A DNA stretch of 64,000 nt from Auanema rhodensis (lineage: Eukaryota; Animalia; Nematoda). The position numbers were made by a program, and so were the translations under genes. The DNA lies in contig OZ059900.1 in the NCBI GenBank assembly GCA_964057225.1, positions 21,266,001 through 21,330,000 of the forward strand, in the 5' to 3' direction. The notes under the pieces are model-generated. The model was not told where the DNA came from, did not search any database, and worked only from the letters and a program-made list of their open reading frames with translations. Below, one piece after another: positions 21,901 to 49,270 of this stretch. Every line of letters begins with the position of its first letter. Position 1 is the first letter of the stretch.

Positions 21901-22672
21901 CTAATTTCCTTAATTTTCTAACCCCTGTTTTTTTGTCGTGAAAGTGGAACTAGACGTTGTACGAACAATTTTGAGCTAGGTTTCATTGACATTGCATGAG
22001 TTTGAACACATGAAATCGTAAGTCAAAACCTTGTTTACAGCGAAAATTCCAAAAACTGGTTTTCCAGCATAATAAAATATTTCTCATGGGAAATACTGTG
22101 TTTTTGTATTTTTCTAGTGTTCAGCATGTAAGATACTTCATTTTAGTATGTAACACGCTGAAATTTGTTGCATTTGACGACTCATATGAACAAAAATCGA
22201 TTTAATCAATATTAGCCATAAGGGGCGTGCCCTCAGAATATGCTAATTTCCTAAATTTTCTAACCCCTGTTTTTTTGTCGTGAAAGTGGAACTAGACGTT
22301 GTACGAACAATTTTGAGCTAGGTTTCATTGACATTGCATGAGTTTGAACACATGAAATCGTAAGTCAAAACCTTGTTTACAGCGAAAATTCCAAAAACTG
22401 GTTTTCCAGCATAATAAAATATTTCTCATGGGAAATACTGTGTTTTTGTATTTTTCTAGTGTTCAGCATGTAAAATGGTTCATTTAAGTATGTAACACGC
22501 TGAAATTCGTTGCATTTGACTACTCATATGAACAAAAATCGATTTAATCAATATTAGCCATAAGGGGCGTGCCCTCAGAATATGCTAATTTCCTTAATTT
22601 TCTAACCCTTGTTTTTTTGTCGTGAAAGTGGAACTAGACGTTGTACAAACAATTTTGAGCTAGGTTTCATTG

Positions 22673-22703
22673 TGTGACATATGAACAAAAATCGATTTCA
22701 ATG
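22673..22703. other. Primary fold-back (inversion) junction of the array
   Basis: ...GGTTTCATTG|TGTGA|CATATGAACAAAAATCGATTT (monomer 280-300, forward)|CAATG|TGAGTCGTCAAATG... (reverse complement from monomer position 281 downward). Confidence 0.95.
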
Positions 22704-25700: not shown

Positions 25701-28700
25701 GTTAGAAAATTAAGGAAATTAGCATATTCTGAGGGCACGCCCCTTATGGCTAATATTGATTAAATCGATTTTTGTTCATATGAGTCGTCAAATGCAACGA
25801 ATTTCAGCGTGTTACATACTGAAATGAAGCATTTTACATGCTGAACACTAGAAAAATACAAAAACACAGTATTTCTCATGAGAAATATTTTATTATGCTG
25901 GAAAACCAGTTTTTGGAAATTTCGCTGTAAACAAGGTTTTGACTTACGATTTCATGTGTTCAAACTCATGCAATGTCAATGAAACCTAGCTCAAAATTGT
26001 TCGTACAACGTCTAGTTCCACTTTCACGACAAAAAAACAGGGGTTAGAAAATTAAGGAAATTAGCATATTCTGAGGGCACGCCCCTTATGGCTAATATTG
26101 ATTAAATCGATTTTTGTTCATATGAGTCGTCAAATGCAACGAATTTCAGCGTGTTACATACTAAAATGAAGCATTTTACATGCTGAACACTAGAAAAATA
26201 CAAAAACACAGTATTTCCCATGAGAAATATTTTATTATGCTGGAAAACCAGTTTTTGGAAATTTCGCTGTAAACAATGTTTTGACTTACGATTTCATGTG
26301 TTCAAACTCATGCAATGTCAATGAAACCTGGCTCAAAATTGTTCGTACAACGTCTAGTTCCACTTTCACGACAAAAAAACAGGGGTTAGAAAATTAAGGA
26401 AATTAGCATATTCTGAGGGCACGCCCCTTATGGCTAATATTGATTAAATCGATTTTTGTTCATATGAGTCGTCAAATGCAACGAATTTCAGCGTGTTACA
26501 TACTAAAATGAATCATTTTACATGCTGAACACTAGAAAAATACAAAAACACAGTATTTCCCATGAGAAATATTTTATTATGCTGGAAAACCAGTTTTTGG
26601 AAATTTCGCTGTAAACAAGGTTTTGACTTACGATTTCATGTGTTCAAACTCATGCAATGTCAATGAAACCTAGCTCAAAATTGTTTGTACAACGTCTAGT
26701 TCCACTTTCACGACAAAAAAACAAGGGTTAGAAAATTAAGGAAATTAGCATATTCTGAGGGCACGCCCCTTATGGCTAATATTGATTAAATCGATTTTTG
26801 TTCATATGAGTAGTCAAATGCAACGAATTTCAGCGTGTTACATACTAAAATGAACCATTTTACATGCTGAACACTAGAAAAATACAAAAACACAGTATTT
26901 CCCATGAGAAATATTTTATTATGCTGGAAAACCAGTTTTTGGAATTTTCGCTGTAAACAAGGTTTTGACTTACGATTTCATGTGTTCAAACTCATGCAAT
27001 GTCAATGAAACCTAGCTCAAAATTGTTCGTACAACGTCTAGTTCCACTTTCACGACAAAAAAACAGGGGTTAGAAAATTTAGGAAATTAGCATATTCTGA
27101 GGGCACGCCCCTTATGGCTAATATTGATTAAATCGATTTTTGTTCATATGAGTCGTCAAATGCAACGAATTTCAGCGTGTTACATACTAAAATGAAGCAT
27201 TTTACATGCTGAACACTAGAAAAATACAAAAACACAGTATTTCCCATGAGAAATATTTTATTATGCTGGAAAACCAGTTTTTGGAAATTTCGCTGTAAAC
27301 AAGGTTTTGACTTACGATTTCATGTGTTCAAACTCATGCAATGTCAATGAAACCTGGCTCAAAATTGTTCGTACAACGTCTAGTTCCACTTTCACGACAA
27401 AAAAACAGGGGTTAGAAAATTAAGGAAATTAGCATATTCTGAGGGCACGCCCCTTATGGCTAATATTGATTAAATCGATTTTTGTTCATATGAGTCGTCA
27501 AATGCAACGAATTTCAGCGTGTTACATACTAAAATGAATCATTTTACATGCTGAACACTAGAAAAATACAAAAACACAGTATTTCTCATGAGAAATATTT
27601 TATTATGCTGGAAAACCAGTTTTTGGAAATTTCGCTGTAAACAAGGTTTTGACTTACGATTTCATGTGTTCAAACTCATGCAATGTCAATGAAACCTAGC
27701 TCAAAATTGTTCGTACAACGTCTAGTTCCACTTTCACGACAAAAAAACAGGGGTTAGAAAATTAAGGAAATTAGCATATTCTGAGGGCACGCCCCTTATG
27801 GCTAATATTGATTAAATCGATTTTTGTTCATATGAGTCGTCAAATGCAACGAATTTCAGCGTGTTACATACTAAAATGAAGCATTTTACATGCTGAACAC
27901 TAGAAAAATACAAAAACACAGTATTTCCCATGAGAAATATTTTATTATGCTGGAAAACCAGTTTTTGGAAATTTCGCTGTAAACAATGTTTTGACTTACG
28001 ATTTCATGTGTTCAAACTCATGCAATGTCAATGAAACCTGGCTCAAAATTGTTCGTACAACGTCTAGTTCCACTTTCACGACAAAAAAACAGGGGTTAGA
28101 AAATTAAGGAAATTAGCATATTCTGAGGGCACGCCCCTTATGGCTAATATTGATTAAATCGATTTTTGTTCATATGAGTCGTCAAATGCAACGAATTTCA
28201 GCGTGTTACATACTAAAATGAATCATTTTACATGCTGAACACTAGAAAAATACAAAAACACAGTATTTCCCATGAGAAATATTTTATTATGCTGGAAAAC
28301 CAGTTTTTGGAAATTTCGCTGTAAACAAGGTTTTGACTTACGATTTCATGTGTTCAAACTCATGCAATGTCAATGAAACCTAGCTCAAAATTGTTTGTAC
28401 AACGTCTAGTTCCACTTTCACGACAAAAAAACAAGGGTTAGAAAATTAAGGAAATTAGCATATTCTGAGGGCACGCCCCTTATGGCTAATATTGATTAAA
28501 TCGATTTTTGTTCATATGAGTAGTCAAATGCAACGAATTTCAGCGTGTTACATACTAAAATGAACCATTTTACATGCTGAACACTAGAAAAATACAAAAA
28601 CACAGTATTTCCCATGAGAAATATTTTATTATGCTGGAAAACCAGTTTTTGGAATTTTCGCTGTAAACAAGGTTTTGACTTACGATTTCATGTGTTCAAA

Positions 28701-29829
28701 CTCATGCAATGTCAATGAAACCTAGCTCAAAATTGTTCGTACAACGTCTAGTTCCACTTTCACGACAAAAAAACAGGGGTTAGAAAATTTAGGAAATTAG
28801 CATATTCTGAGGGCACGCCCCTTATGGCTAATATTGATTAAATCGATTTTTGTTCATATGAGTCGTCAAATGCAACGAATTTCAGCGTGTTACATACTAA
28901 AATGAAGCATTTTACATGCTGAACACTAGAAAAATACAAAAACACAGTATTTCCCATGAGAAATATTTTATTATGCTGGAAAACCAGTTTTTGGAAATTT
29001 CGCTGTAAACAAGGTTTTGACTTACGATTTCATGTGTTCAAACTCATGCAATGTCAATGAAACCTAGCTCAAAATTGTTCCTACAACGTCTAGTTCCACT
29101 TTCACGACAAAAAAACAGGGGTTAGAAAATTAATGAAATTAGCATATTCTGAGGGCACGCCCCTTATGGCTAATATTGATTAAATCGATTTTTGTTCATA
29201 TGAGTCGTCAAATGCAACGAATTTCATCGTGTTACATACTAAAATTAAGCATTTTACATGCTGAACACTAGAAAAATACAAAAACACAGTATTTCTCATG
29301 AGAAATATTTTATTATGCTGGAAAACCAGTTTTTGGAAATTTCGCTGTAAACAAGGTTTTGACTTACGATTTCATGTGTTCAAACTCATGCAATGTCAAT
29401 GAAACCTAGCTCAAAATTGTTTGTACAACGTCTAGTTCCACTTTCACGACAAAAAAACAGGGGTTAGAAAATTAAGGAAATTAGCATATTCTGAGGGCAC
29501 GCCCCTTATGGCTAATATTGATTAAATCGATTTTTGTTCATATGAGTAGTCAAATGCAACGAATTTCAGCGTGTTACATACTAAAATGAAGCATTTTACA
29601 TGCTGAACACTAGAAAAATACAAAAACACAGTATTTCCCATGAGAAATATTTTATTATGCTGGAAAACCAGTTTTTGGAATTTTCGCTGTAAACAAGGTT
29701 TTGACTTACGATTTCATGTGTTCAAACTCATGCAATGTCAATGAAACCTAGCTCAAAATTGTTCGTACAACGTCTAGTTCCACTTTCACGACAAAAAAAC
29801 AGGGGTTAGAAAATTAAGGAAATTAGCAT
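22704..29829 (-). repeat. Reverse satellite block (~21 monomers): right-type variants grading into inverted left-type monomers
   Basis: Reverse-complement monomers with 342-bp period. Right-type variants (GCGACG, TTATGA, CCTGG, AATGTT, GAATC) run to ~26600; left-type markers (TTTGTAC, CAAGGG, GAGTAG, GAACC, ATTTAGG) appear from ~26685. Confidence 0.95.
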
Positions 29830-30273
29830 TTTTCTAGTGTTCAGCATGTAAAATGCTTCATTTTAGTATGTAACACGCTGAAATTCGTTGCATTTGACGA
29901 CTCATATGAACAAAAATCGATTTAATCAATATTAGCCATAAGGGGCGTGCCCTCAGAATATGCTAATTTCCTTAATTTTCTAACCCCTGTTTTTTTGTCG
30001 TGAAAGTGGAACTAGACGTTGTACGAACAATTTTGAGCTAGGTTTCATTGACATTGCATGAGTTTGAACACATGAAATCGTAAGTCAAAACCTTGTTTAC
30101 AGCGAAATTTCCAAAAACTGGTTTTCCAGCATAATAAAATAATTCTCATGAGAAATACTGTGTTTTTGTATTTTTCTAGTGTTCAGCATGTAAAATGCTT
30201 CATTTTAGTATGTAACACGCTGAAATTCGTTGCATTTGACGACTCACATTGAAATCGATTTTTGTTCATATGT
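29828..30273 (+). repeat. Forward island 1 (446 bp including junction-B cassette)
   Basis: Reverse complement of 22677-23122, including the AAATAATTCTC variant. Confidence 0.95.
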
Positions 30274-31896
30274 GTTACATACTAAAATGAAGCATTTTAC
30301 ATGCTGAACACTAGAAAAACACAAAAACACAGTATTTCTCATGAGAAATATTTTATTATGCTGGAAAACCAGTTTTTGGAAATTTCGCTGTAAACAAGGT
30401 TTTGACTTACGATTTCATGTGTTCAAACTCATGCAATGTCAATGAAACCTAGCTCAAAATTGTTTGTACAACGTCTAGTTCCACTTTCACGACAAAAAAA
30501 CAAGGGTTAGAAAATTAAGGAAATTAGCATATTCTGAGGGCACGCCCCTTATGGCTAATATTGATTAAATCGATTTTTGTTCATATGAGTAGTCAAATGC
30601 AACGAATTTCAGCGTGTTACATACTAAAATGAACCATTTTACATGCTGAACACTAGAAAAATACAAAAACACAGTATTTCCCATGAGAAATATTTTATTA
30701 TGCTGGAAAACCAGTTTTTGGAATTTTCGCTGTAAACAAGGTTTTGACTTACGATTTCATGTGTTCAAACTCATGCAATGTCAATGAAACCTAGCTCAAA
30801 ATTGTTCGTACAACGTCTAGTTCCACTTTCACGACAAAAAAACAGGGGTTAGAAAATTTAGGAAATTAGCATATTCTGAGGGCACGCCCCTTATGGCTAA
30901 TATTGATTAAATCGATTTTTGTTCATATGAGTCGTCAAATGCAACGAATTTCAGCGTGTTACATACTAAAATGAAGCATTTTACATGCTGAACACTAGAA
31001 AAATACAAAAACACAGTATTTCCCATGAGAAATATTTTATTATGCTGGAAAACCAGTTTTTGGAAATTTCGCTGTAAACAAGGTTTTGACTTACGATTTC
31101 ATGTGTTCAAACTCATGCAATGTCAATGAAACCTAGCTCAAAATTGTTCCTACAACGTCTAGTTCCACTTTCACGACAAAAAAACAGGGGTTAGAAAATT
31201 AATGAAATTAGCATATTCTGAGGGCACGCCCCTTATGGCTAATATTGATTAAATCGATTTTTGTTCATATGAGTCGTCAAATGCAACGAATTTCATCGTG
31301 TTACATACTAAAATTAAGCATTTTACATGCTGAACACTAGAAAAATACAAAAACACAGTATTTCTCATGAGAAATATTTTATTATGCTGGAAAACCAGTT
31401 TTTGGAAATTTCGCTGTAAACAAGGTTTTGACTTACGATTTCATGTGTTCAAACTCATGCAATGTCAATGAAACCTAGCTCAAAATTGTTTGTACAACGT
31501 CTAGTTCCACTTTCACGACAAAAAAACAGGGGTTAGAAAATTAAGGAAATTAGCATATTCTGAGGGCACGCCCCTTATGGCTAATATTGATTAAATCGAT
31601 TTTTGTTCATATGAGTAGTCAAATGCAACGAATTTCAGCGTGTTACATACTAAAATGAAGCATTTTACATGCTGAACACTAGAAAAATACAAAAACACAG
31701 TATTTCCCATGAGAAATATTTTATTATGCTGGAAAACCAGTTTTTGGAATTTTCGCTGTAAACAAGGTTTTGACTTACGATTTCATGTGTTCAAACTCAT
31801 GCAATGTCAATGAAACCTAGCTCAAAATTGTTCGTACAACGTCTAGTTCCACTTTCACGACAAAAAAACAGGGGTTAGAAAATTAAGGAAATTAGC

Positions 31897-32342
31897 ATTT
31901 TTCTAGTGTTCAGCATGTAAAATGCTTCATTTTAGTATGTAACACGCTGAAATTCGTTGCATTTGACGACTCATATGAACAAAAATCGATTTAATCAATA
32001 TTAGCCATAAGGGGCGTGCCCTCAGAATATGCTAATTTCCTTAATTTTCTAACCCCTGTTTTTTTGTCGTGAAAGTGGAACTAGACGTTGTACGAACAAT
32101 TTTGAGCTAGGTTTCATTGACATTGCATGAGTTTGAACACATGAAATCGTAAGTCAAAACCTTGTTTACAGCGAAATTTCCAAAAACTGGTTTTCCAGCA
32201 TAATAAAATAATTCTCATGAGAAATACTGTGTTTTTGTATTTTTCTAGTGTTCAGCATGTAAAATGCTTCATTTTAGTATGTAACACGCTGAAATTCGTT
32301 GCATTTGACGACTCACATTGAAATCGATTTTTGTTCATATGT
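31897..32342 (+). repeat. Forward island 2 (446 bp)
   Basis: Junction A at start; GACTCACATTGAAATCGATTTTTGTTCATATGT (junction B) at end. Confidence 0.95.
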
Positions 32343-33965
32343 GTTACATACTAAAATGAAGCATTTTACATGCTGAACACTAGAAAAATACAAAAACACA
32401 GTATTTCTCATGAGAAATATTTTATTATGCTGGAAAACCAGTTTTTGGAAATTTCGCTGTAAACAAGGTTTTGACTTACGATTTCATGTGTTCAAACTCA
32501 TGCAATGTCAATGAAACCTAGCTCAAAATTGTTTGTACAACGTCTAGTTCCACTTTCACGACAAAAAAACAAGGGTTAGAAAATTAAGGAAATTAGCATA
32601 TTCTGAGGGCACGCCCCTTATGGCTAATATTGATTAAATCGATTTTTGTTCATATGAGTAGTCAAATGCAACGAATTTCAGCGTGTTACATACTAAAATG
32701 AACCATTTTACATGCTGAACACTAGAAAATTACAAAAACACAGTATTTCCCATGAGAAATATTTTATTATGCTGGAAAACCAGTTTTTGGAATTTTCGCT
32801 GTAAACAAGGTTTTGACTTACGATTTCATGTGTTCAAACTCATGCAATGTCAATGAAACCTAGCTCAAAATTGTTCGTACAACGTCTAGTTCCACTTTCA
32901 CGACAAAAAAACAGGGGTTAGAAAATTTAGGAAATTAGCATATTCTGAGGGCACGCCCCTTATGGCTAATATTGATTAAATCGATTTTTGTTCATATGAG
33001 TCGTCAAATGCAACGAATTTCAGCGTGTTACATACTAAAATGAAGCATTTTACATGCTGAACACTAGAAAAATACAAAAACACAGTATTTCCCATGAGAA
33101 ATATTTTATTATGCTGGAAAACCAGTTTTTGGAAATTTCGCTGTAAACAAGGTTTTGACTTACGATTTCATGTGTTCAAACTCATGCAATGTCAATGAAA
33201 CCTAGCTCAAAATTGTTCCTACAACGTCTAGTTCCACTTTCACGACAAAAAAACAGGGGTTAGAAAATTAATGAAATTAGCATATTCTGAGGGCACGCCC
33301 CTTATGGCTAATATTGATTAAATCGATTTTTGTTCATATGAGTCGTCAAATGCAACGAATTTCATCGTGTTACATACTAAAATTAAGCATTTTACATGCT
33401 GAACACTAGAAAAATACAAAAACACAGTATTTCTCATGAGAAATATTTTATTATGCTGGAAAACCAGTTTTTGGAAATTTCGCTGTAAACAAGGTTTTGA
33501 CTTACGATTTCATGTGTTCAAACTCATGCAATGTCAATGAAACCTAGCTCAAAATTGTTTGTACAACGTCTAGTTCCACTTTCACGACAAAAAAACAGGG
33601 GTTAGAAAATTAAGGAAATTAGCATATTCTGAGGGCACGCCCCTTATGGCTAATATTGATTAAATCGATTTTTGTTCATATGAGTAGTCAAATGCAACGA
33701 ATTTCAGCGTGTTACATACTAAAATGAAGCATTTTACATGCTGAACACTAGAAAAATACAAAAACACAGTATTTCCCATGAGAAATATTTTATTATGCTG
33801 GAAAACCAGTTTTTGGAAATTTCGCTGTAAACAAGGTTTTGACTTACGATTTCATGTGTTCAAACTCATGCAATGTCAATGAAACCTAGCTCAAAATTGT
33901 TTGTACAACGTCTAGTTCCACTTTCACGACAAAAAAACAGGGGTTAGAAAATTAAGGAAATTAGC

Positions 33966-34069
33966 ATTTTTCTAGTGTTCAGCATGTAAAATGCTTCATT
34001 TTAGTATGTAACACGCTGAAATTCGTTGCATTTGACGACTCACATTGAAATCGATTTTTGTTCATATGT
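33966..34069 (+). repeat. Forward island 3 (104 bp)
   Basis: Same two junctions, one monomer shorter (446-342). Confidence 0.95.
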
Positions 34070-35692
34070 GTTACATACTAAAATGAAGCATTTTACATGC
34101 TGAACACTAGAAAAATACAAAAACACAGTATTTCTCATGAGAAATATTTTATTATGCTGGAAAACCAGTTTTTGGAAATTTCGCTGTAAACAAGGTTTTG
34201 ACTTACGATTTCATGTGTTCAAACTCATGCAATGTCAATGAAACCTAGCTCAAAATTGTTTCTACAACGTCTAGTTCCACTTTCACGACAAAAAAACAAG
34301 GGTTAGAAAATTAAGGAAATTAGCATATTCTGAGGGCACGCCCCTTATGGCTAATATTGATTAAATCGATTTTTGTTCATATGAGTAGTCAAATGCAACG
34401 AATTTCAGCGTGTTACATACTAAAATGAACCATTTTACATGCTGAACACTGGAAAAATACAAAAACACAGTATTTCCCATGAGAAATATTTTATTATGCT
34501 GGAAAACCAGTTTTTGGAATTTTCGCTGTAAACAAGGTTTTGACTTACGATTTCATGTGTTCAAACTCATGCAATGTCAATGAAACCTAGCTCAAAATTG
34601 TTCGTACAACGTCTAGTTCCACTTTCACGACAAAAAAACAGGGGTTAGAAAATTTAGGAAATTAGCATATTCTGAGGGCACGCCCCTTATGGCTAATATT
34701 GATTAAATCGATTTTTGTTCATATGAGTCGTCAAATGCAACGAATTTCAGCGTGTTACATACTAAAATGAAGCATTTTACATGCTGAACACTAGAAAAAT
34801 ACAAAAACACAGTATTTCCCATGAGAAATATTTTATTATGCTGGAAAACCAGTTTTTGGAAATTTCGCTGTAAACAAGGTTTTGACTTACGATTTCATGT
34901 GTTCAAACTCATGCAATGTCAATGAAACCTAGCTCAAAATTGTTCCTACAACGTCTAGTTCCACTTTCACGACAAAAAAACAGGGGTTAGAAAATTAATG
35001 AAATTAGCATATTCTGAGGGCACGCCCCTTATGGCTAATATTGATTAAATCGATTTTTGTTCATATGAGTCGTCAAATGCAACGAATTTCATCGTGTTAC
35101 ATACTAAAATTAAGCATTTTACATGCTGAACACTAGAAAAATACAAAAACACAGTATTTCTCATGAGAAATATTTTATTATGCTGGAAAACCAGTTTTTG
35201 GAAATTTCGCTGTAAACAAGGTTTTGACTTACGATTTCATGTGTTCAAACTCATGCAATGTCAATGAAACCTAGCTCAAAATTGTTTGTACAACGTCTAG
35301 TTCAACTTTCACGACAAAAAAACAGGGGTTAGAAAATTAAGGAAATTAGCATATTCTGAGGGCACGCCCCTTATGGCTAATATTGATTAAATCGATTTTT
35401 GTTCATATGAGTAGTCAAATGCAACGAATTTCAGCGTGTTACATACTAAAATGAAGCATTTTACATGCTGAACACTAGAAAAATACAAAAACACAGTATT
35501 TCCCATGAGAAATATTTTATTATGCTGGAAAACCAGTTTTTGGAATTTTCGCTGTAAACAAGGTTTTGACTTACGATTTCATGTGTTCAAACTCATGCAA
35601 TGTCAATGAAACCTAGCTCAAAATTGTTCGTACAACGTCTAGTTCCACTTTCACGACAAAAAAACAGGGGTTAGAAAATTAAGGAAATTATC

Positions 35693-36138
35693 ATTTTTCT
35701 AGTGTTCAGCATGTAAAATGCTTCATTTTAGTATGTAACACGCTGAAATTCGTTGCATTTGACGACTCATATGAACAAAAATCGATTTAATCAATATTAG
35801 CCATAAGGGGCGTGCCCTCAGAATATGCTAATTTCCTTAATTTTCTAACCCCTGTTTTTTTGTCGTGAAAGTGGAACTAGACGTTGTACGAACAATTTTG
35901 AGCTAGGTTTCATTGACATTGCATGAGTTTGAACACATGAAATCGTAAGTCAAAACCTTGTTTACAGCGAAATTTCCAAAAACTGGTTTTCCAGCATAAT
36001 AAAATAATTCTCATGAGAAATACTGTGTTTTTGTATTTTTCTAGTGTTCAGCATGTAAAATGCTTCATTTTAGTATGTAACACGCTGAAATTCGTTGCAT
36101 TTGACGACTCACATTGAAATCGATTTTTGTTCATATGT
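35693..36138 (+). repeat. Forward island 4 (446 bp)
   Basis: Same junctions; private G>T just upstream (ATTATCAT). Confidence 0.95.
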
Positions 36139-38103
36139 GTTACATACTAAAATGAAGCATTTTACATGCTGAACACTAGAAAAATACAAAAACACAGTAT
36201 TTCTCATGAGAAATATTTTATTATGCTGGAAAACCAGTTTTTGGAAATTTCGCTGTAAACAAGGTTTTGACTTACGATTTCATGTGTTCAAACTCATGCA
36301 ATGTCAATGAAACCTAGCTCAAAATTGTTTCTACAACGTCTAGTTCCACTTTCACGACAAAAAAACAAGGGTTAGAAAATTAAGGAAATTAGCATATTCT
36401 GAGGGCACGCCCCTTATGGCTAATATTGATTAAATCGATTTTTGTTCATATGAGTAGTCAAATGCAACGAATTTCAGCGTGTTACATACTAAAATGAACC
36501 ATTTTACATGCTGAACACTGGAAAAATACAAAAACACAGTATTTCCCATGAGAAATATTTTATTATGCTGGAAAACCAGTTTTTGGAATTTTCGCTGTAA
36601 ACAAGGTTTTGACTTACGATTTCATGTGTTCAAACTCATGCAATGTCAATGAAACCTAGCTCAAAATTGTTCGTACAACGTCTAGTTCCACTTTCACGAC
36701 AAAAAAACAGGGGTTAGAAAATTAAGGAAATTAGCATATTCTGAGGGCACGCCCCTTATGGCTAATATTGATTAAATCGATTTTTGTTCATATGAGTAGT
36801 CAAATGCAACGAATTTCAGCGTGTTACATACTAAAATGAACCATTTTACATGCTGAACACTAGAAAAATACAAAAACACAGTATTTCCCATGAGAAATAT
36901 TTTATTATGCTGGAAAACCAGTTTTTGGAATTTTCGCTGTAAACAAGGTTTTGACTTACGATTTCATGTGTTCAAACTCATGCAATGTCAATGAAACCTA
37001 GCTCAAAATTGTTCGTACAACGTCTAGTTCCACTTTCACGACAAAAAAACAGGGGTTAGAAAATTTAGGAAATTAGCATATTCTGAGGGCACGCCCCTTA
37101 TGGCTAATATTGATTAAATCGATTTTTGTTCATATGAGTCGTCAAATGCAACGAATTTCAGCGTGTTACATACTAAAATGAAGCATTTTACATGCTGAAC
37201 ACTAGAAAAATACAAAAACACAGTATTTCCCATGAGAAATATTTTATTATGCTGGAAAACCAGTTTTTGGAAATTTCGCTGTAAACAAGGTTTTGACTTA
37301 CGATTTCATGTGTTCAAACTCATGCAATGTCAATGAAACCTAGCTCAAAATTGTTCCTACAACGTCTAGTTCCACTTTCACGACAAAAAAACAGGGGTTA
37401 GAAAATTAATGAAATTAGCATATTCTGAGGGCACGCCCCTTATGGCTAATATTGATTAAATCGATTTTTGTTCATATGAGTCGTCAAATGCAACGAATTT
37501 CATCGTGTTACATACTAAAATTAAGCATTTTACATGCTGAACACTAGAAAAATACAAAAACACAGTATTTCTCATGAGAAATATTTTATTATGCTGGAAA
37601 ACCAGTTTTTGGAAATTTCGCTGTAAACAAGGTTTTGACTTACGATTTCATGTGTTCAAACTCATGCAATGTCAATGAAACCTAGCTCAAAATTGTTTGT
37701 ACAACGTCTAGTTCAACTTTCACGACAAAAAAACAGGGGTTAGAAAATTAAGGAAATTAGCATATTCTGAGGGCACGCCCCTTATGGCTAATATTGATTA
37801 AATCGATTTTTGTTCATATGAGTAGTCAAATGCAACGAATTTCAGCGTGTTACATACTAAAATGAAGCATTTTACATGCTGAACACTAGAAAAATACAAA
37901 AACACAGTATTTCCCATGAGAAATATTTTATTATGCTGGAAAACCAGTTTTTGGAATTTTCGCTGTAAACAAGGTTTTGACTTACGATTTCATGTGTTCA
38001 AACTCATGCAATGTCAATGAAACCTAGCTCAAAATTGTTCGTACAACGTCTAGTTCCACTTTCACGACAAAAAAACAGGGGTTAGAAAATTAAGGAAATT
38101 AGC

Positions 38104-38891
38104 ATTTTTCTAGTGTTCAGCATGTAAAATGCTTCATTTTAGTATGTAACACGCTGAAATTCGTTGCATTTGACGACTCATATGAACAAAAATCGATTTA
38201 ATCAATATTAGCCATAAGGGGCGTGCCCTCAGAATATGCTAATTTCCTTAATTTTCTAACCCCTGTTTTTTTGTCGTGAAAGTGGAACTAGACGTTGTAC
38301 GAACAATTTTGAGCTAGGTTTCATTGACATTGCATGAGTTTGAACACATGAAATCGTAAGTCAAAACCTTGTTTACAGCGAAATTTCCAAAAACTGGTTT
38401 TCCAGCATAATAAAATAATTCTCATGAGAAATACTGTGTTTTTGTATTTTTCTAGTGTTCAGCATGTAAAATGCTTCATTTTAGTATGTAACACGCTGAA
38501 ATTCGTTGCATTTGACGACTCATATGAACAAAAATCGATTTAATCAATATTAGCCATAAGGGGCGTGCCCTCAGAATATGCTAATTTCCTTAATTTTCTA
38601 ACCCCTGTTTTTTTGTCGTGAAAGTGGAACTAGACGTTGTACGAACAATTTTGAGCTAGGTTTCATTGACATTGCATGAGTTTGAACACATGAAATCGTA
38701 AGTCAAAACCTTGTTTACAGCGAAATTTCCAAAAACTGGTTTTCCAGCATAATAAAATAATTCTCATGAGAAATACTGTGTTTTTGTATTTTTCTAGTGT
38801 TCAGCATGTAAAATGCTTCATTTTAGTATGTAACACGCTGAAATTCGTTGCATTTGACGACTCACATTGAAATCGATTTTTGTTCATATGT
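38104..38891 (+). repeat. Forward island 5 (788 bp)
   Basis: Same junctions, one monomer longer (446+342); AAATAATTCTC variant present twice. Confidence 0.95.
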
Positions 38892-39146
38892 GTTACATAC
38901 TAAAATGAAGCATTTTACATGCTGAACACTAGAAAAATACAAAAACACAGTATTTCTCATGAGAAATATTTTATTATGCTGGAAAACCAGTTTTTGGAAT
39001 TTTCGCTGTAAACAAGGTTTTGACTTACGATTTCATGTGTTCAAACTCATGCAATGTCAATGAAACCTAGCTCAAAATTGTTCGTACAACGTCTAGTTCC
39101 ACTTTCACGACAAAAAAACAGGGGTTAGAAAATTAAGGAAATTAGC

Positions 39147-39250
39147 ATTTTTCTAGTGTTCAGCATGTAAAATGCTTCATTTTAGTATGTAACACGCTGA
39201 AATTCGTTGCATTTGACGACTCACATTGAAATCGATTTTTGTTCATATGT
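39147..39250 (+). repeat. Forward island 6 (104 bp)
   Basis: Junctions A and B. Confidence 0.95.
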
Positions 39251-40873
39251 GTTACATACTAAAATGAAGCATTTTACATGCTGAACACTAGAAAAATACA
39301 AAAACACAGTATTTCTCATGAGAAATATTTTATTATGCTGGAAAACCAGTTTTTGGAAATTTCGCTGTAAACAAGGTTTTGACTTACGATTTCATGTGTT
39401 CAAACTCATGCAATGTCAATGAAACCTAGCTCAAAATTGTTTGTACAACGTCTAGTTCCACTTTCACGACAAAAAAACAAGGGTTAGAAAATTAAGGAAA
39501 TTAGCATATTCTGAGGGCACGCCCCTTATGGCTAATATTGATTAAATCGATTTTTGTTCATATGAGTAGTCAAATGCAACGAATTTCAGCGTGTTACATA
39601 CTAAAATGAACCATTTTACATGCTGAACACTAGAAAAATACAAAAACACAGTATTTCCCATGAGAAATATTTTATTATGCTGGAAAACCAGTTTTTGGAA
39701 TTTTCGCTGTAAACAAGGTTTTGACTTACGATTTCATGTGTTCAAACTCATGCAATGTCAATGAAACCTAGCTCAAAATTGTTCGTACAACGTCTAGTTC
39801 CACTTTCACGACAAAAAAACAGGGGTTAGAAAATTTAGGAAATTAGCATATTCTGAGGGCACGCCCCTTATGGCTAATATTGATTAAATCGATTTTTGTT
39901 CATATGAGTCGTCAAATGCAACGAATTTCAGCGTGTTACATACTAAAATGAAGCATTTTACATGCTGAACACTAGAAAAATACAAAAACACAGTATTTCC
40001 CATGAGAAATATTTTATTATGCTGGAAAACCAGTTTTTGGAAATTTCGCTGTAAACAAGGTTTTGACTTACGATTTCATGTGTTCAAACTCATGCAATGT
40101 CAATGAAACCTAGCTCAAAATTGTTCCTACAACGTCTAGTTCCACTTTCACGACAAAAAAACAGGGGTTAGAAAATTAATGAAATTAGCATATTCTGAGG
40201 GCACGCCCCTTATGGCTAATATTGATTAAATCGATTTTTGTTCATATGAGTCGTCAAATGCAACGAATTTCATCGTGTTACATACTAAAATTAAGCATTT
40301 TACATGCTGAACACTAGAAAAATACAAAAACACAGTATTTCTCATGAGAAATATTTTATTATGCTGGAAAACCAGTTTTTGGAAATTTCGCTGTAAACAA
40401 GGTTTTGACTTACGATTTCATGTGTTCAAACTCATGCAATGTCAATGAAACCTAGCTCAAAATTGTTTGTACAACGTCTAGTTCCACTTTCACGACAAAA
40501 AAACAGGGGTTAGAAAATTAAGGAAATTAGCATATTCTGAGGGCACGCCCCTTATGGCTAATATTGATTAAATCGATTTTTGTTCATATGAGTAGTCAAA
40601 TGCAACGAATTTCAGCGTGTTACATACTAAAATGAAGCATTTTACATGCTGAACACTAGAAAAATACAAAAACACAGTATTTCCCATGAGAAATATTTTA
40701 TTATGCTGGAAAACCAGTTTTTGGAATTTTCGCTGTAAACAAGGTTTTGACTTACGATTTCATGTGTTCAAACTCATGCAATGTCAATGAAACCTAGCTC
40801 AAAATTGTTCGTACAACGTCTAGTTCCACTTTCACGACAAAAAAACAGGGGTTAGAAAATTAAGGAAATTAGC

Positions 40874-41319
40874 ATTTTTCTAGTGTTCAGCATGTAAAAT
40901 GCTTCATTTTAGTATGTAACACGCTGAAATTCGTTGCATTTGACGACTCATATGAACAAAAATCGATTTAATCAATATTAGCCATAAGGGGCGTGCCCTC
41001 AGAATATGCTAATTTCCTTAATTTTCTAACCCCTGTTTTTTTGTCGTGAAAGTGGAACTAGACGTTGTACGAACAATTTTGAGCTAGGTTTCATTGACAT
41101 TGCATGAGTTTGAACACATGAAATCGTAAGTCAAAACCTTGTTTACAGCGAAATTTCCAAAAACTGGTTTTCCAGCATAATAAAATAATTCTCATGAGAA
41201 ATACTGTGTTTTTGTATTTTTCTAGTGTTCAGCATGTAAAATGCTTCATTTTAGTATGTAACACGCTGAAATTCGTTGCATTTGACGACTCACATTGAAA
41301 TCGATTTTTGTTCATATGT
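40874..41319 (+). repeat. Forward island 7 (446 bp)
   Basis: Junctions A and B. Confidence 0.95.
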
Positions 41320-41574
41320 GTTACATACTAAAATGAAGCATTTTACATGCTGAACACTAGAAAAATACAAAAACACAGTATTTCTCATGAGAAATATTTT
41401 ATTATGCTGGAAAACCAGTTTTTGGAATTTTCGCTGTAAACAAGGTTTTGACTTACGATTTCATGTGTTCAAACTCATGCAATGTCAATGAAACCTAGCT
41501 CAAAATTGTTCGTACAACGTCTAGTTCCACTTTCACGACAAAAAAACAGGGGTTAGAAAATTAAGGAAATTAGC

Positions 41575-41678
41575 ATTTTTCTAGTGTTCAGCATGTAAAA
41601 TGCTTCATTTTAGTATGTAACACGCTGAAATTCGTTGCATTTGACGACTCACATTGAAATCGATTTTTGTTCATATGT
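41575..41678 (+). repeat. Forward island 8 (104 bp)
   Basis: Junctions A and B. Confidence 0.95.
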
Positions 41679-43301
41679 GTTACATACTAAAATGAAGCAT
41701 TTTACATGCTGAACACTAGAAAAATACAAAAACACAGTATTTCTCATGAGAAATATTTTATTATGCTGGAAAACCAGTTTTTGGAAATTTCGCTGTAAAC
41801 AAGGTTTTGACTTACGATTTCATGTGTTCAAACTCATGCAATGTCAATGAAACCTAGCTCAAAATTGTTTGTACAACGTCTAGTTCCACTTTCACGACAA
41901 AAAAACAAGGGTTAGAAAATTAAGGAAATTAGCATATTCTGAGGGCACGCCCCTTATGGCTAATATTGATTAAATCGATTTTTGTTCATATGAGTAGTCA
42001 AATGCAACGAATTTCAGCGTGTTACATACTAAAATGAACCATTTTACATGCTGAACACTAGAAAAATACAAAAACACAGTATTTCCCATGAGAAATATTT
42101 TATTATGCTGGAAAACCAGTTTTTGGAATTTTCGCTGTAAACAAGGTTTTGACTTACGATTTCATGTGTTCAAACTCATGCAATGTCAATGAAACCTAGC
42201 TCAAAATTGTTCGTACAACGTCTAGTTCCACTTTCACGACAAAAAAACAGGGGTTAGAAAATTTAGGAAATTAGCATATTCTGAGGGCACGCCCCTTATG
42301 GCTAATATTGATTAAATCGATTTTTGTTCATATGAGTCGTCAAATGCAACGAATTTCAGCGTGTTACATACTAAAATGAAGCATTTTACATGCTGAACAC
42401 TAGAAAAATACAAAAACACAGTATTTCCCATGAGAAATATTTTATTATGCTGGAAAACCAGTTTTTGGAAATTTCGCTGTAAACAAGGTTTTGACTTACG
42501 ATTTCATGTGTTCAAACTCATGCAATGTCAATGAAACCTAGCTCAAAATTGTTCCTACAACGTCTAGTTCCACTTTCACGACAAAAAAACAGGGGTTAGA
42601 AAATTAATGAAATTAGCATATTCTGAGGGCACGCCCCTTATGGCTAATATTGATTAAATCGATTTTTGTTCATATGAGTCGTCAAATGCAACGAATTTCA
42701 TCGTGTTACATACTAAAATTAAGCATTTTACATGCTGAACACTAGAAAAATACAAAAACACAGTATTTCTCATGAGAAATATTTTATTATGCTGGAAAAC
42801 CAGTTTTTGGAAATTTCGCTGTAAACAAGGTTTTGACTTACGATTTCATGTGTTCAAACTCATGCAATGTCAATGAAACCTAGCTCAAAATTGTTTGTAC
42901 AACGTCTAGTTCCACTTTCACGACAAAAAAACAGGGGTTAGAAAATTAAGGAAATTAGCATATTCTGAGGGCACGCCCCTTATGGCTAATATTGATTAAA
43001 TCGATTTTTGTTCATATGAGTAGTCAAATGCAACGAATTTCAGCGTGTTACATACTAAAATGAAGCATTTTACATGCTGAACACTAGAAAAATACAGAAA
43101 CACAGTATTTCCCATGAGAAATATTTTATTATGCTGGAAAACCAGTTTTTGGAATTTTCGCTGTAAACAAGGTTTTGACTTACGATTTCATGTGTTCAAA
43201 CTCATGCAATGTCAATGAAACCTAGCTCAAAATTGTTCGTACAACGTCTAGTTCCACTTTCACGACAAAAAAACAGGGGTTAGAAAATTAAGGAAATTAG
43301 C

Positions 43302-43405
43302 ATTTTTCTAGTGTTCAGCATGTAAAATGCTTCATTTTAGTATGTAACACGCTGAAATTCGTTGCATTTGACGACTCACATTGAAATCGATTTTTGTTCA
43401 TATGT
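43302..43405 (+). repeat. Forward island 9 (104 bp)
   Basis: Junctions A and B. Confidence 0.95.
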
Positions 43406-45028
43406 GTTACATACTAAAATGAAGCATTTTACATGCTGAACACTAGAAAAATACAAAAACACAGTATTTCTCATGAGAAATATTTTATTATGCTGGAAAA
43501 CCAGTTTTTGGAAATTTCGCTGTAAACAAGGTTTTGACTTACGATTTCATGTGTTCAAACTCATGCAATGTCAATGAAACCTAGCTCAAAATTGTTTGTA
43601 CAACGTCTAGTTCCACTTTCACGACAAAAAAACAAGGGTTAGAAAATTAAGGAAATTAGCATATTCTGAGGGCACGCCCCTTATGGCTAATATTGATTAA
43701 ATCGATTTTTGTTCATATGAGTAGTCAAATGCAACGAATTTCATCGTGTTACATACTAAAATGAACCATTTTACATGCTGAACACTAGAAAAATACAAAA
43801 ACACAGTATTTCCCATGAGAAATATTTTATTATGCTGGAAAACCAGTTTTTGGAATTTTCGCTGTAAACAAGGTTTTGACTTACGATTTCATGTGTTCAA
43901 ACTCATGCAATGTCAATGAAACCTAGCTCAAAATTGTTCGTACAACGTCTAGTTCCACTTTCACGACAAAAAAACAGGGGTTAGAAAATTTAGGAAATTA
44001 GCATATTCTGAGGGCACGCCCCTTATGGCTAATATTGATTAAATCGATTTTTGTTCATATGAGTCGTCAAATGCAACGAATTTCAGCGTGTTACATACTA
44101 AAATGAAGCATTTTACATGCTGAACACTAGAAAAATACAAAAACACAGTATTTCCCATGAGAAATATTTTATTATGCTGGAAAACCAGTTTTTGGAAATT
44201 TCGCTGTAAACAAGGTTTTGACTTACGATTTCATGTGTTCAAACTCATGCAATGTCAATGAAACCTAGCTCAAAATTGTTCCTACAACGTCTAGTTCCAC
44301 TTTCACGACAAAAAAACAGGGGTTAGAAAATTAATGAAATTAGCATATTCTGAGGGCACGCCCCTTATGGCTAATATTGATTAAATCGATTTTTGTTCAT
44401 ATGAGTCGTCAAATGCAACGAATTTCATCGTGTTACATACTAAAATTAAGCATTTTACATGCTGAACACTAGAAAAATACAAAAACACAGTATTTCTCAT
44501 GAGAAATATTTTATTATGCTGGAAAACCAGTTTTTGGAAATTTCGCTGTAAACAAGGTTTTGACTTACGATTTCATGTGTTCAAACTCATGCAATGTCAA
44601 TGAAACCTAGCTCAAAATTGTTTGTACAACGTCTAGTTCCACTTTCACGACAAAAAAACAGGGGTTAGAAAATTAAGGAAATTAGCATATTCTGAGGGCA
44701 CGCCCCTTATGGCTAATATTGATTAAATCGATTTTTGTTCATATGAGTAGTCAAATGCAACGAATTTCAGCGTGTTACATACTAAAATGAAGCATTTTAC
44801 ATGCTGAACACTAGAAAAATACAAAAACACAGTATTTCCCATGAGAAATATTTTATTATGCTGGAAAACCAGTTTTTGGAATTTTCGCTGTAAACAAGGT
44901 TTTGACTTACGATTTCATGTGTTCAAACTCATGCAATGTCAATGAAACCTAGCTCAAAATTGTTCGTACAACGTCTAGTTCCACTTTCACGACAAAAAAA
45001 CAGGGGTTAGAAAATTAAGGAAATTAGC

Positions 45029-45132
45029 ATTTTTCTAGTGTTCAGCATGTAAAATGCTTCATTTTAGTATGTAACACGCTGAAATTCGTTGCATTTGACG
45101 ACTCACATTGAAATCGATTTTTGTTCATATGT
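45029..45132 (+). repeat. Forward island 10 (104 bp)
   Basis: Junctions A and B. Confidence 0.95.
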
Positions 45133-46755
45133 GTTACATACTAAAATGAAGCATTTTACATGCTGAACACTAGAAAAATACAAAAACACAGTATTTCTCA
45201 TGAGAAATATTTTATTATGCTGGAAAACCAGTTTTTGGAAATTTCGCTGTAAACAAGGTTTTGACTTACGATTTCATGTGTTCAAACTCATGCAATGTCA
45301 ATGAAACCTAGCTCAAAATTGTTTGTACAACGTCTAGTTCCACTTTCACGACAAAAAAACAAGGGTTAGAAAATTAAGGAAATTAGCATATTCTGAGGGC
45401 ACGCCCCTTATGGCTAATATTGATTAAATCGATTTTTGTTCATATGAGTAGTCAAATGCAACGAATTTCAGCGTGTTACATACTAAAATGAACCATTTTA
45501 CATGCTGAACACTAGAAAAATACAAAAACACAGTATTTCCCATGAGAAATATTTTATTATGCTGGAAAACCAGTTTTTGGAATTTTCGCTGTAAACAAGG
45601 TTTTGACTTACGATTTCATGTGTTCAAACTCATGCAATGTCAATGAAACCTAGCTCAAAATTGTTCGTACAACGTCTAGTTCCACTTTCACGACAAAAAA
45701 ACAGGGGTTAGAAAATTTAGGAAATTAGCATATTCTGAGGGCACGCCCCTTATGGCTAATATTGATTAAATCGATTTTTGTTCATATGAGTCGTCAAATG
45801 CAACGAATTTCAGCGTGTTACATACTAAAATGAAGCATTTTACATGCTGAACACTAGAAAAATACAAAAACACAGTATTTCCCATGAGAAATATTTTATT
45901 ATGCTGGAAAACCAGTTTTTGGAAATTTCGCTGTAAACAAGGTTTTGACTTACGATTTCATGTGTTCAAACTCATGCAATGTCAATGAAACCTAGCTCAA
46001 AATTGTTCCTACAACGTCTAGTTCCACTTTCACGACAAAAAAACAGGGGTTAGAAAATTAATGAAATTAGCATATTCTGAGGGCACGCCCCTTATGGCTA
46101 ATATTGATTAAATCGATTTTTGTTCATATGAGTCGTCAAATGCAACGAATTTCATCGTGTTACATACTAAAATTAAGCATTTTACATGCTGAACACTAGA
46201 AAAATACAAAAACACAGTATTTCTCATGAGAAATATTTTATTATGCTGGAAAACCAGTTTTTGGAAATTTCGCTGTAAACAAGGTTTTGACTTACGATTT
46301 CATGTGTTCAAACTCATGCAATGTCAATGAAACCTAGCTCAAAATTGTTTGTACAACGTCTAGTTCCACTTTCACGACAAAAAAACAGGGGTTAGAAAAT
46401 TAAGGAAATTAGCATATTCTGAGGGCACGCCCCTTATGGCTAATATTGATTAAATCGATTTTTGTTCATATGAGTAGTCAAATGCAACGAATTTCAGCGT
46501 GTTACATACTAAAATGAAGCATTTTACATGCTGAACACTAGAAAAATACAAAAACACAGTATTTCCCATGAGAAATATTTTATTATGCTGGAAAACCAGT
46601 TTTTGGAATTTTCGCTGTAAACAAGGTTTTGACTTACGATTTCATGTGTTCAAACTCATGCAATGTCAATGAAACCTAGCTCAAAATTGTTCGTACAACG
46701 TCTAGTTCCACTTTCACGACAAAAAAACAGGGGTTAGAAAATTAAGGAAATTAGC

Positions 46756-47201
46756 ATTTTTCTAGTGTTCAGCATGTAAAATGCTTCATTTTAGTATGTA
46801 ACACGCTGAAATTCGTTGCATTTGACGACTCATATGAACAAAAATCGATTTAATCAATATTAGCCATAAGGGGCGTGCCCTCAGAATATGCTAATTTCCT
46901 TAATTTTCTAACCCCTGTTTTTTTGTCGTGAAAGTGGAACTAGACGTTGTACGAACAATTTTGAGCTAGGTTTCATTGACATTGCATGAGTTTGAACACA
47001 TGAAATCGTAAGTCAAAACCTTGTTTACAGCGAAATTTCCAAAAACTGGTTTTCCAGCATAATAAAATAATTCTCATGAGAAATACTGTGTTTTTGTATT
47101 TTTCTAGTGTTCAGCATGTAAAATGCTTCATTTTAGTATGTAACACGCTGAAATTCGTTGCATTTGACGACTCACATTGAAATCGATTTTTGTTCATATG
47201 T
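46756..47201 (+). repeat. Forward island 11 (446 bp)
   Basis: Junctions A and B. Confidence 0.95.
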
Positions 47202-48824
47202 GTTACATACTAAAATGAAGCATTTTACATGCTGAACACTAGAAAAATACAAAAACACAGTATTTCTCATGAGAAATATTTTATTATGCTGGAAAACCAG
47301 TTTTTGGAAATTTCGCTGTAAACAAGGTTTTGACTTACGATTTCATGTGTTCAAACTCATGCAATGTCAATGAAACCTAGCTCAAAATTGTTTGTACAAC
47401 GTCTAGTTCCACTTTCACGACAAAAAAACAAGGGTTAGAAAATTAAGGAAATTAGCATATTCTGAGGGCACGCCCCTTATGGCTAATATTGATTAAATCG
47501 ATTTTTGTTCATATGAGTAGTCAAATGCAACGAATTTCAGCGTGTTACATACTAAAATGAACCATTTTACATGCTGAACACTAGAAAAATACAAAAACAC
47601 AGTATTTCCCATGAGAAATATTTTATTATGCTGGAAAACCAGTTTTTGGAATTTTCGCTGTAAACAAGGTTTTGACTTACGATTTCATGTGTTCAAACTC
47701 ATGCAATGTCAATGAAACCTAGCTCAAAATTGTTCGTACAACGTCTAGTTCCACTTTCACGACAAAAAAACAGGGGTTAGAAAATTTAGGAAATTAGCAT
47801 ATTCTGAGGGCACGCCCCTTATGGCTAATATTGATTAAATCGATTTTTGTTCATATGAGTCGTCAAATGCAACGAATTTCAGCGTGTTACATACTAAAAT
47901 GAAGCATTTTACATGCTGAACACTAGAAAAATACAAAAACACAGTATTTCCCATGAGAAATATTTTATTATGCTGGAAAACCAGTTTTTGGAAATTTCGC
48001 TGTAAACAAGGTTTTGACTTACGATTTCATGTGTTCAAACTCATGCAATGTCAATGAAACCTAGCTCAAAATTGTTCCTACAACGTCTAGTTCCACTTTC
48101 ACGACAAAAAAACAGGGGTTAGAAAATTAATGAAATTAGCATATTCTGAGGGCACGCCCCTTATGGCTAATATTGATTAAATCGATTTTTGTTCATATGA
48201 GTCGTCAAATGCAACGAATTTCATCGTGTTACATACTAAAATTAAGCATTTTACATGCTGAACACTAGAAAAATACAAAAACACAGTATTTCTCATGAGA
48301 AATATTTTATTATGCTGGAAAACCAGTTTTTGGAAATTTCGCTGTAAACAAGGTTTTGACTTACGATTTCATGTGTTCAAACTCATGCAATGTCAATGAA
48401 ACCTAGCTCAAAATTGTTTGTACAACGTCTAGTTCCACTTTCACGACAAAAAAACAGGGGTTAGAAAATTAAGGAAATTAGCATATTCTGAGGGCACGCC
48501 CCTTATGGCTAATATTGATTAAATCGATTTTTGTTCATATGAGTAGTCAAATGCAACGAATTTCAGCGTGTTACATACTAAAATGAAGCATTTTACATGC
48601 TGAACACTAGAAAAATACAAAAACACAGTATTTCCCATGAGAAATATTTTATTATGCTGGAAAACCAGTTTTTGGAATTTTCGCTGTAAACAAGGTTTTG
48701 ACTTACGATTTCATGTGTTCAAACTCATGCAATGTCAATGAAACCTAGCTCAAAATTGTTCGTACAACGTCTAGTTCCACTTTCACGACAAAAAAACAGG
48801 GGTTAGAAAATTAAGGAAATTAGC

Positions 48825-49270
48825 ATTTTTCTAGTGTTCAGCATGTAAAATGCTTCATTTTAGTATGTAACACGCTGAAATTCGTTGCATTTGACGACTC
48901 ATATGAACAAAAATCGATTTAATCAATATTAGCCATAAGGGGCGTGCCCTCAGAATATGCTAATTTCCTTAATTTTCTAACCCCTGTTTTTTTGTCGTGA
49001 AAGTGGAACTAGACGTTGTACGAACAATTTTGAGCTAGGTTTCATTGACATTGCATGAGTTTGAACACATGAAATCGTAAGTCAAAACCTTGTTTACAGC
49101 GAAATTTCCAAAAACTGGTTTTCCAGCATAATAAAATAATTCTCATGAGAAATACTGTGTTTTTGTATTTTTCTAGTGTTCAGCATGTAAAATGCTTCAT
49201 TTTAGTATGTAACACGCTGAAATTCGTTGCATTTGACGACTCACATTGAAATCGATTTTTGTTCTTATGT
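48825..49270 (+). repeat. Forward island 12 (446 bp)
   Basis: Junctions A and B; private CATATG>CTTATG change in junction B. Confidence 0.95.

Follow-up and report, generated by a model that had tools for sequence, protein, structure and literature searches.

Layout of the array and of the inversion block

The DNA analysed is a 64,000-nt stretch of the nematode Auanema rhodensis (NCBI GenBank assembly GCA_964057225.1, contig OZ059900.1, positions 21,266,001 to 21,330,000 of the forward strand), referred to below as the window; positions are counted from its first letter, and phases are numbered after the monomer at 1–342. The entire 64-kb window was found to consist of one 342-bp satellite, both by Tandem Repeats Finder (TRF) and by strand-aware BLAST tiling of one monomer, and base counts gave an AT content of 67%. 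According to the same tiling, the satellite runs in the plus orientation over 1–22672 and in the minus orientation over 22689–64000, apart from 12 plus islands within 29828–49258. The plus array (1–22672; TRF, BLAST tiling and phase mapping) comprises 66 monomers and ends at monomer phase 85. It is followed by the main orientation switch (22673–22731; k-mer search and phase mapping), by a left minus flank termed S (22732–29827), by the inversion block that is the subject of this report (29828–49268), and by a right minus flank termed S′ (49269–53500). The inversion block behaves as a young higher-order repeat (HOR) with an inversion built into each unit.

The block contains 24 orientation switches in 19.4 kb, namely 12 plus islands alternating with minus arms, and only two junction sequences are used: junction A, at which minus passes into plus, and junction B, at which plus passes back into minus. 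With non-overlapping boundaries, the islands measure 102, 444 or 786 nt and the arms 257, 1625 or 1967 nt. The units, taken from one junction A to the next, measure 2069, 2069, 1727, 2411, 1043, 1727, 701, 1727, 1727, 1727 and 2069 nt in order; these are five distinct lengths, and all of them equal 342n+17. Unit 1 (29828–31896, 2069 nt) is entered from TAGC of junction A (29824–29827) at plus phase 205 and consists of an island (29828–30271, 444 nt, with the core of junction B at 30219–30271) and an arm (30272–31896, 1625 nt). In unit 2 (31897–33965, 2069 nt) the island lies at 31897–32340 and the arm at 32341–33965, and in unit 3 (33966–35692, 1727 nt) a 102-nt island (33966–34067) is followed by an arm at 34068–35692. 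Unit 4 (35693–38103, 2411 nt), which is entered from a variant of junction A (TATC), carries a 444-nt island (35693–36136) and an arm with one extra monomer (36137–38103, 1967 nt). Unit 5 (38104–39146, 1043 nt) combines a 786-nt island (38104–38889) with a short arm bearing right-flank-type variants (38890–39146, 257 nt), and unit 6 (39147–40873, 1727 nt) a 102-nt island (39147–39248) with an arm at 39249–40873. The same two-unit layout recurs in unit 7 (40874–41574, 701 nt), with its 444-nt island (40874–41317) and its short arm, again of 257 nt and with right-flank-type variants (41318–41574), and in unit 8 (41575–43301, 1727 nt; island 41575–41676, arm 41677–43301). Unit 9 (43302–45028, 1727 nt; island 43302–43403, arm 43404–45028) and unit 10 (45029–46755, 1727 nt; island 45029–45130, arm 45131–46755), which is identical to unit 6, are followed by unit 11 (46756–48824, 2069 nt; island 46756–47199, arm 47200–48824). 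The twelfth unit is represented by its plus island (48825–49268, 444 nt), which ends in a junction B with the single-nucleotide polymorphism (SNP) variant TTGTTCTTAT.

An earlier note on this stretch had described 24 switches through two junction sequences and lengths quantised as 359+342n, and both descriptions were borne out, the former by strand-aware BLAST and the latter by the A-to-A lengths. Its segment lengths (104/446/788 and 259/1627/1969) follow the right pattern with each value 2 nt too large, as junction bases had been counted twice; for the same reason its derivation of a 359-bp form from 104+259 fails, the sum being 363. That such a form is not seen holds in the A-to-A frame only. 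In the B-to-B frame a 359-nt interval (257-nt arm plus 102-nt island) occurs twice, from unit 5 to unit 6 (B k-mers at 38859/39218) and from unit 7 to unit 8 (41287/41646), and never as two consecutive copies.

Classification as a HOR was examined by three properties. A multi-monomer unit is repeated in tandem, with 12 consecutive units each bounded by junction A. Identity between units exceeds identity between monomers: 0–5 differences were counted per 1727–2069 nt between units (99.75–100% identical), as against 2–8 per 342 nt among the monomers of one arm, and the monomers inside one unit diverge by 0.6–2.3%. A constant period made of an integer number of head-to-tail monomers was not found, the five lengths being 342n+17 and each unit containing two orientations, so the block is a complex or irregular HOR and not a regular one. 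The breakpoint pair thus lies inside the amplified unit, and arm lengths differ in steps of whole monomers between invariant junctions, as the earlier note had proposed. No open reading frame (ORF) of at least 45 aa was found within 38000–41000 and no Rfam family within 22000–32500. The satellite is regarded as non-coding, and no function is needed to account for the block.

Junctions, flanks and the proposed founding event

Junction A is marked by the k-mer AAATTAGCATTTTTCTAGTG and the new joint of junction B by TTGTTCATATGTGTTAC. Of the two junction k-mers given in the earlier note, 11 copies (A) and 12 copies (B) were found on the plus strand of the window. The twelfth junction A is the SNP variant with TATC instead of TAGC (35689–35692), and the B copy at 49258 carries one SNP; the B k-mer also occurs once in reverse complement, at the main switch (22686). 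Each junction type is therefore the same in 12/12 copies but for one SNP. At junction A, the minus monomer runs through phase 1 on to phase 339 (TAGC) and is joined to plus phase 205, with a possible overlap AT.TT of 2–5 nt, which is compatible with a microhomology joint but of a length that also arises by chance. At junction B, the plus strand runs to phase 279 and is followed by CATTG, by the 10-nt palindrome AAATCGATTT, by minus phases 290–281, by a G, and by the minus strand from phase 253 onward. The same 4-nt indel patch and the same 27-nt gap are present in all B copies, and with no more than a single SNP per junction type this means that the junctions are identical by descent. With 12 repeats of either junction, both of them complex and about 40 nt long, chance is not an issue.

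The main switch explains much of the composition of junction B. Its order is plus phase 85, the filler TGTGA(C), plus phases 280–300 ending in the palindrome AAATCGATTT, CAATG, and the minus strand from phase 279; its k-mer CATTGTGTGACATATG is unique within the window. The region 22673–22731 is thus a patchwork of a 5–6-nt filler, a 21-nt plus snippet, CAATG (the reverse complement of the final 5 nt of the plus array) and a minus monomer with a patch 4 nt shorter, and it looks like the scar of a templated insertion or a template switch. Read from 22677 onward, the main switch matches the reverse complement of the junction B core exactly. When island 5 with its B core was compared with the reverse complement of 22677–23140, 464 nt were identical, and the similarity stopped right after a shared GT. 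The apparent complexity of junction B is accordingly explained by an old switch core carried in reverse, the sole new joint being the step at GT to minus phase 253, located on the opposite strand at a distance of 53 nt; the 2-nt GT overlap of this joint, with its fold-back spacer of 53 nt, is again compatible with microhomology but so short that such overlaps also arise by chance. The main switch is preferred as older than junction B on parsimony only, since junction B then needs one simple new joint and nothing else.

The 391-nt stem of the island, that is, the part that can pair with the next arm, has its sole perfect match outside the block in the reverse complement of 22732–23122, which adjoins the main switch; among about 165 candidate positions, the second best shows 1 mismatch and all others show at least 2. 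The right flank S′ starts at phase 253 directly after the junction core and is an in-register paralogue of 22732–26963, with 26 mismatches in 4232 nt (49269–53500) and no gap, other registers giving at least 53. This paralogy is clear for 3–4 kb and is then lost among near-identical monomers. The start of S therefore serves both as the template of the island and as the paralogue of the right flank, and its last monomers, of types T, A, C, B and A, match the long arms as their template. About 391 nt from the start of S (phases 253 to 205) are present three times: at 22732–23122 in the minus orientation, in the island in the plus orientation (0 mismatches), and at 49269–49659 in the minus orientation (3 mismatches). 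The middle copy is thus inverted between two direct copies, and this direct, inverted, direct order of the same segment is the layout of an inverted triplication, as in duplication–triplication/inversion–duplication (DUP-TRP/INV-DUP) and origin-dependent inverted-repeat amplification (ODIRA). Divergence from the first copy amounts to 0.5% for the island and 0.6% for S′. Both values exceed the unit-to-unit divergence, and such similar values above it are expected for one older event. The possibility that the island arose by fold-back from the sequence to its left was also considered and was rejected, with 5 mismatches in 413 nt as against 0 for the start of S.

Taken together, the founder looks like a direct–inverted–direct rearrangement of the inverted-triplication type with two short microhomology joints. 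A rearrangement of the replication type, involving two template switches, or a break repair of equivalent effect would have taken place beside the plus/minus switch that already existed at 22.7 kb. Its product would have consisted of minus S up to 29827, joined at A to the first ~446 nt of S in inverted orientation, old switch core included, and this inverted copy would in turn have been joined at B, through GT, to a second direct copy of S from phase 253. An inverted-triplication founder is inferred here, not proven, given microhomologies of only 2–5 nt and a satellite that is 98–99% homogeneous.

Amplification and competing explanations

The steps after the founder left footprints in the variants. 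The long arms are made of a partial monomer (phases 253 to 1) and four monomers of types A-C-B-A, and they show 2 differences from the 1625 nt preceding the first junction A. Their first partial monomer carries the right-flank state at sites 20 and 67, whereas at sites 110, 193 and 231 it agrees with monomer 28203 of the left flank; among the states shared with monomer 28203 are two variants found in only 4/59 and 5/59 of the other monomers. As read from these variants, this partial monomer is a recombinant of the two flanks. If the first monomer right of B recombines once, out of register, with the monomer that precedes A by four positions, the outcome is exactly that recombinant and exactly a 2069-nt duplication. 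It was by such an unequal crossover, involving the first partial monomer right of B, that the 2069-bp unit was first duplicated. Further unequal exchanges, between sister chromatids or break-induced, then raised the number of units to 12; through them islands and arms gained or lost whole monomers, and a block of two units was duplicated. The shared layout of units 5–6 and 7–8 is the trace of the last of these processes, and private SNPs are common to neighbouring units (3–4, 5/7 and 6/8). In units 5 and 7, by contrast, the short arm has T/C/G, the states of the right flank, which shows that the array border and internal units exchanged sequence later on. The 786-nt island is a 444-nt island with its own monomer duplicated, and its reading as a longer relic of the founder copy was ruled out on this ground. 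The first duplication and the later amplification steps are shown by the variants, and amplification is, on the sequence data at hand, the best-supported step of the scheme.

In-register homologous exchange in a satellite yields length steps of whole monomers (342n+17) and fixed junctions. No special mechanism is needed: unequal exchange accounts for the quantised lengths, and its recombination footprints are visible. We therefore regard one founder rearrangement followed by ordinary satellite dynamics, that is, unequal crossing-over, as the probable history of the block.

Amplification could instead have proceeded through an extrachromosomal circle of about 2.07 kb that contained A and B, was copied by rolling-circle replication into a concatemer and was reintegrated, with unequal exchange altering only the lengths afterwards. 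The near-identity of the units does suggest a burst, and a role of extrachromosomal circular DNA (eccDNA) in spreading satellite arrays with inversions has been put forward for Tribolium freemani (PMC12581902). The array lies, however, exactly between both flanks, its arms are derivable from them by a single in-situ crossover, and the partial monomers of right-flank type inside units 5 and 7 need exchanges at the array border and not a reinserted concatemer. A circular intermediate is thus considered improbable.

The existence of the junctions outside the assembly was assessed by a read search with a 162-nt query that spanned A, a 102-nt island and B and in which 80/132 words (61%) are junction-only. 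The share of sampled words reached 0.93 and 0.87 in runs X2 and X1 (one study), 0.73 in run X5 (another study and organism label) and 0.60 in runs X4, X6 and X7 (including a third study); other runs plateaued at 0.20–0.33, which fits generic satellite words only. This argues that both junction sequences exist in independent public data, against an assembly chimera. Absence of the junction sequences from raw reads, which had been named beforehand as grounds for abandoning the array, was not what the search returned, the shares being 0.60–0.93 across three studies with the sampled words undisclosed. Within 35500–39300 the satellite is extremely abundant, with a summed word depth of 1e5–1e6 in four runs under three organism labels, and 83–96% of the sampled 31-mers from a 2.8-kb stretch are common to those runs; this high sharing across labels indicates that the array family is nearly identical across close relatives. 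The window offers no single-copy calibrator for depth.

A single inverted segment or a chimeric read might also have been expanded to 12 tandem copies by the assembler. Units that are 99.75–100% identical fall into the regime in which assemblers mis-estimate copy number, and the 12-fold copy number is known from the assembly alone. Junction-specific words are nevertheless apparently present in runs of three studies under three organism labels, and the units are not clones: they come in five lengths, neighbours have private SNPs in common, and the recombinant monomers fit a coherent genealogy. Such a genealogical pattern is not the product expected of a collapsed or over-expanded repeat, and we judge an assembly artefact unlikely.

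Palindromes are centred on every junction of the block: those at B have a 53-nt loop and stems of 49–391 nt with 0–7 mismatches, the stem being limited to 257 nt where the arm is short, and those at A have a 208-nt loop. When unit 1 was folded as single-stranded DNA, one long hairpin was predicted (−459.5 kcal/mol, z = −74), and by this modelling each unit is a strong substrate for a hairpin or a cruciform. A chromatin function of such a hairpin, cruciform or loop, as hypothesised for the macro-dyad symmetries of Tribolium, could maintain or amplify the cassette and would be compatible with the exchange mechanism preferred above; the palindromes at every B and A, the predicted hairpin and the conserved junction cores are in its favour. 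Conservation is, however, fully explained by the youth of the copies (≤0.25% divergence), the stem lengths vary freely, and only one local array is known, so that a function of this kind appears very unlikely. That the palindrome AAATCGATTT, or a nuclease or recombinase acting on it, made the same inversion in 12 independent events is scarcely credible: the 10-nt palindrome (phases 291–300) is central to the main switch and to junction B and is present in every monomer of the window (187 copies), but only 13/187 lie at a switch, all 12 B share the non-palindromic patch and the 27-nt gap, all 12 A are identical (but for one SNP) and have no palindrome, and flanking private variants are shared as well, which speaks for identity by descent.

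Several points weigh against a single founder followed by unequal crossing-over. The order of events, with the main switch older than junction B, comes from parsimony only; the homogeneity of the satellite (98–99%) leaves the paralogy signals dependent on few sites; beyond about 4 kb, S is no longer the best match of the right flank; and the microhomologies of 2–5 nt are very short. As the sampled words of the run index are undisclosed, the read support for the junctions is indirect, and the assembly is the sole source for the number of the 12 units and for their tandem order. The reads of four runs over 35500–39300 consist of collapsed contigs of 60–90 nt, each placed at one of many equal places, and bear on neither the junctions nor their number.

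Relation to known systems and significance

Some further properties of the satellite were recorded. The plus array contains a segmental duplication of 3428 nt (10 monomers and 8 nt; window 4800–11620) with 7 mismatches in 3350 nt, both copies of which carry the 8-nt tandem duplication GCGTGCCC (near 8192 and near 11620); it is a local HOR-like event with no relation to the inversion block. One minus monomer contains a perfect tandem duplication of 43 nt (60974–61058; TRF, sequence checked). The monomer-type motif A-B-C is frequent in the left half of the plus array and appears mirrored as A-C-B-A at the end of the left minus flank (27800–29827) and in all long arms; both orientations therefore share recent variants, although the arrays are not in-register mirror images. 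A recent fold-back at the main switch, with the end of the plus array as a variant-level mirror of the start of the minus array, was tried and rejected: aligned registers score alike, with 4–11 differences per monomer, in an ungapped test that is broken by indels after 0–4 monomers and is weak on its own. No mirrored order was found in the monomer-type strings either, against a mirror-image reading of the switch. The monomer as a dimer of 171-bp subrepeats, or as a strongly self-complementary sequence, scored no better than shuffles, and no 342-bp nematode satellite was matched in the literature search.

The closest counterparts were found among beetle satellites. In Tribolium madens, thousands of inversion sites fall into few types that are 98–99% conserved, and cassettes are described with fixed inversion and transition points and variable repeat numbers (PMC13081366); T. 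freemani has six conserved inversion types (PMC12581902). Fixed monomers built of inverted subunits are known from T. brevicornis (a 1061-bp satellite) and from T. madens (TmSat2, 704 bp; PMC13081366). The premises of the earlier note, that satellite HORs are usually head-to-tail in one orientation and inversions usually isolated, are outdated in view of these systems (PMC13081366; PMC12581902), and the novelty it implied is not upheld, as conserved inversion sites with variable monomer numbers and units with inverted subunits are known in T. madens, T. freemani and T. brevicornis. The block in A. rhodensis has the same properties as the former two: the array changes orientation at few, highly conserved junction types (two in this case), these fixed points are separated by varying numbers of monomers, and the resulting dyad symmetries are able to form hairpins. 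In Tribolium, however, the copies run into thousands and are spread over several chromosomes, in subarrays that are several kb long and usually number two per array, whereas here 12 tandem copies lie at one locus of a nematode, the islands measure 0.1–0.8 kb, the tandem period is regular, and footprints of the founding crossover can still be seen. As in the 1061-bp satellite of T. brevicornis and in TmSat2, the repeat unit itself holds two inversely oriented segments of the same ancestral sequence; those satellites are old, fixed and genome-wide with a constant unit length, in contrast to a young local block with five unit lengths in which the 359-bp form occurs only twice.

Mechanistic parallels are provided by inverted triplications formed through iterative template switches (PMC11293582) and by fold-back template switching at short inverted repeats (PMC10766183), both of which are documented. 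DUP-TRP/INV-DUP and ODIRA share with the founder proposed here the direct–inverted–direct order, two junctions in cis, one short-range fold-back (here with a 53-nt spacer) and, as far as overlaps of 2–5 nt can show, microhomology only, and they are described as de novo events at unique-sequence loci in humans and yeast. The present event, by contrast, would have occurred inside a homogeneous satellite, where the duplicated extent is blurred, and would have been followed by tandem amplification. With the HORs of primate alpha satellite, the block has in common a unit-to-unit identity far above that between monomers and monomer-quantised length variants by out-of-register exchange; classical HORs are head-to-tail, in one orientation and made of integer monomers, whereas the present unit includes an inversion and a 17-nt remainder.

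The complex HOR is thus a young, local, tandem version of a kind of satellite known from beetles, and not a new category of element or process. It is doubtful that a new family of composite satellites, dyad-symmetric by construction, is arising in the block, now at 12 copies and with the 359-bp B-to-B interval as its minimal form, in a genome where satellites would generally and repeatedly diversify by fold-back inversion with subsequent tandem amplification. If the assembly is right, 12 near-perfect palindromes with stems of up to 391 nt and 53-nt loops stand in tandem in the germline genome of an animal. The block offers a mechanistic intermediate for old complex satellites with inverted subunits and for the conserved inversion sites of beetles, the origin of which is debated between eccDNA and in-situ exchange. 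It is a small worked example in which one event of the inverted-triplication type would give the two fixed junctions and unequal crossing-over the rest, with the founding crossover still legible.

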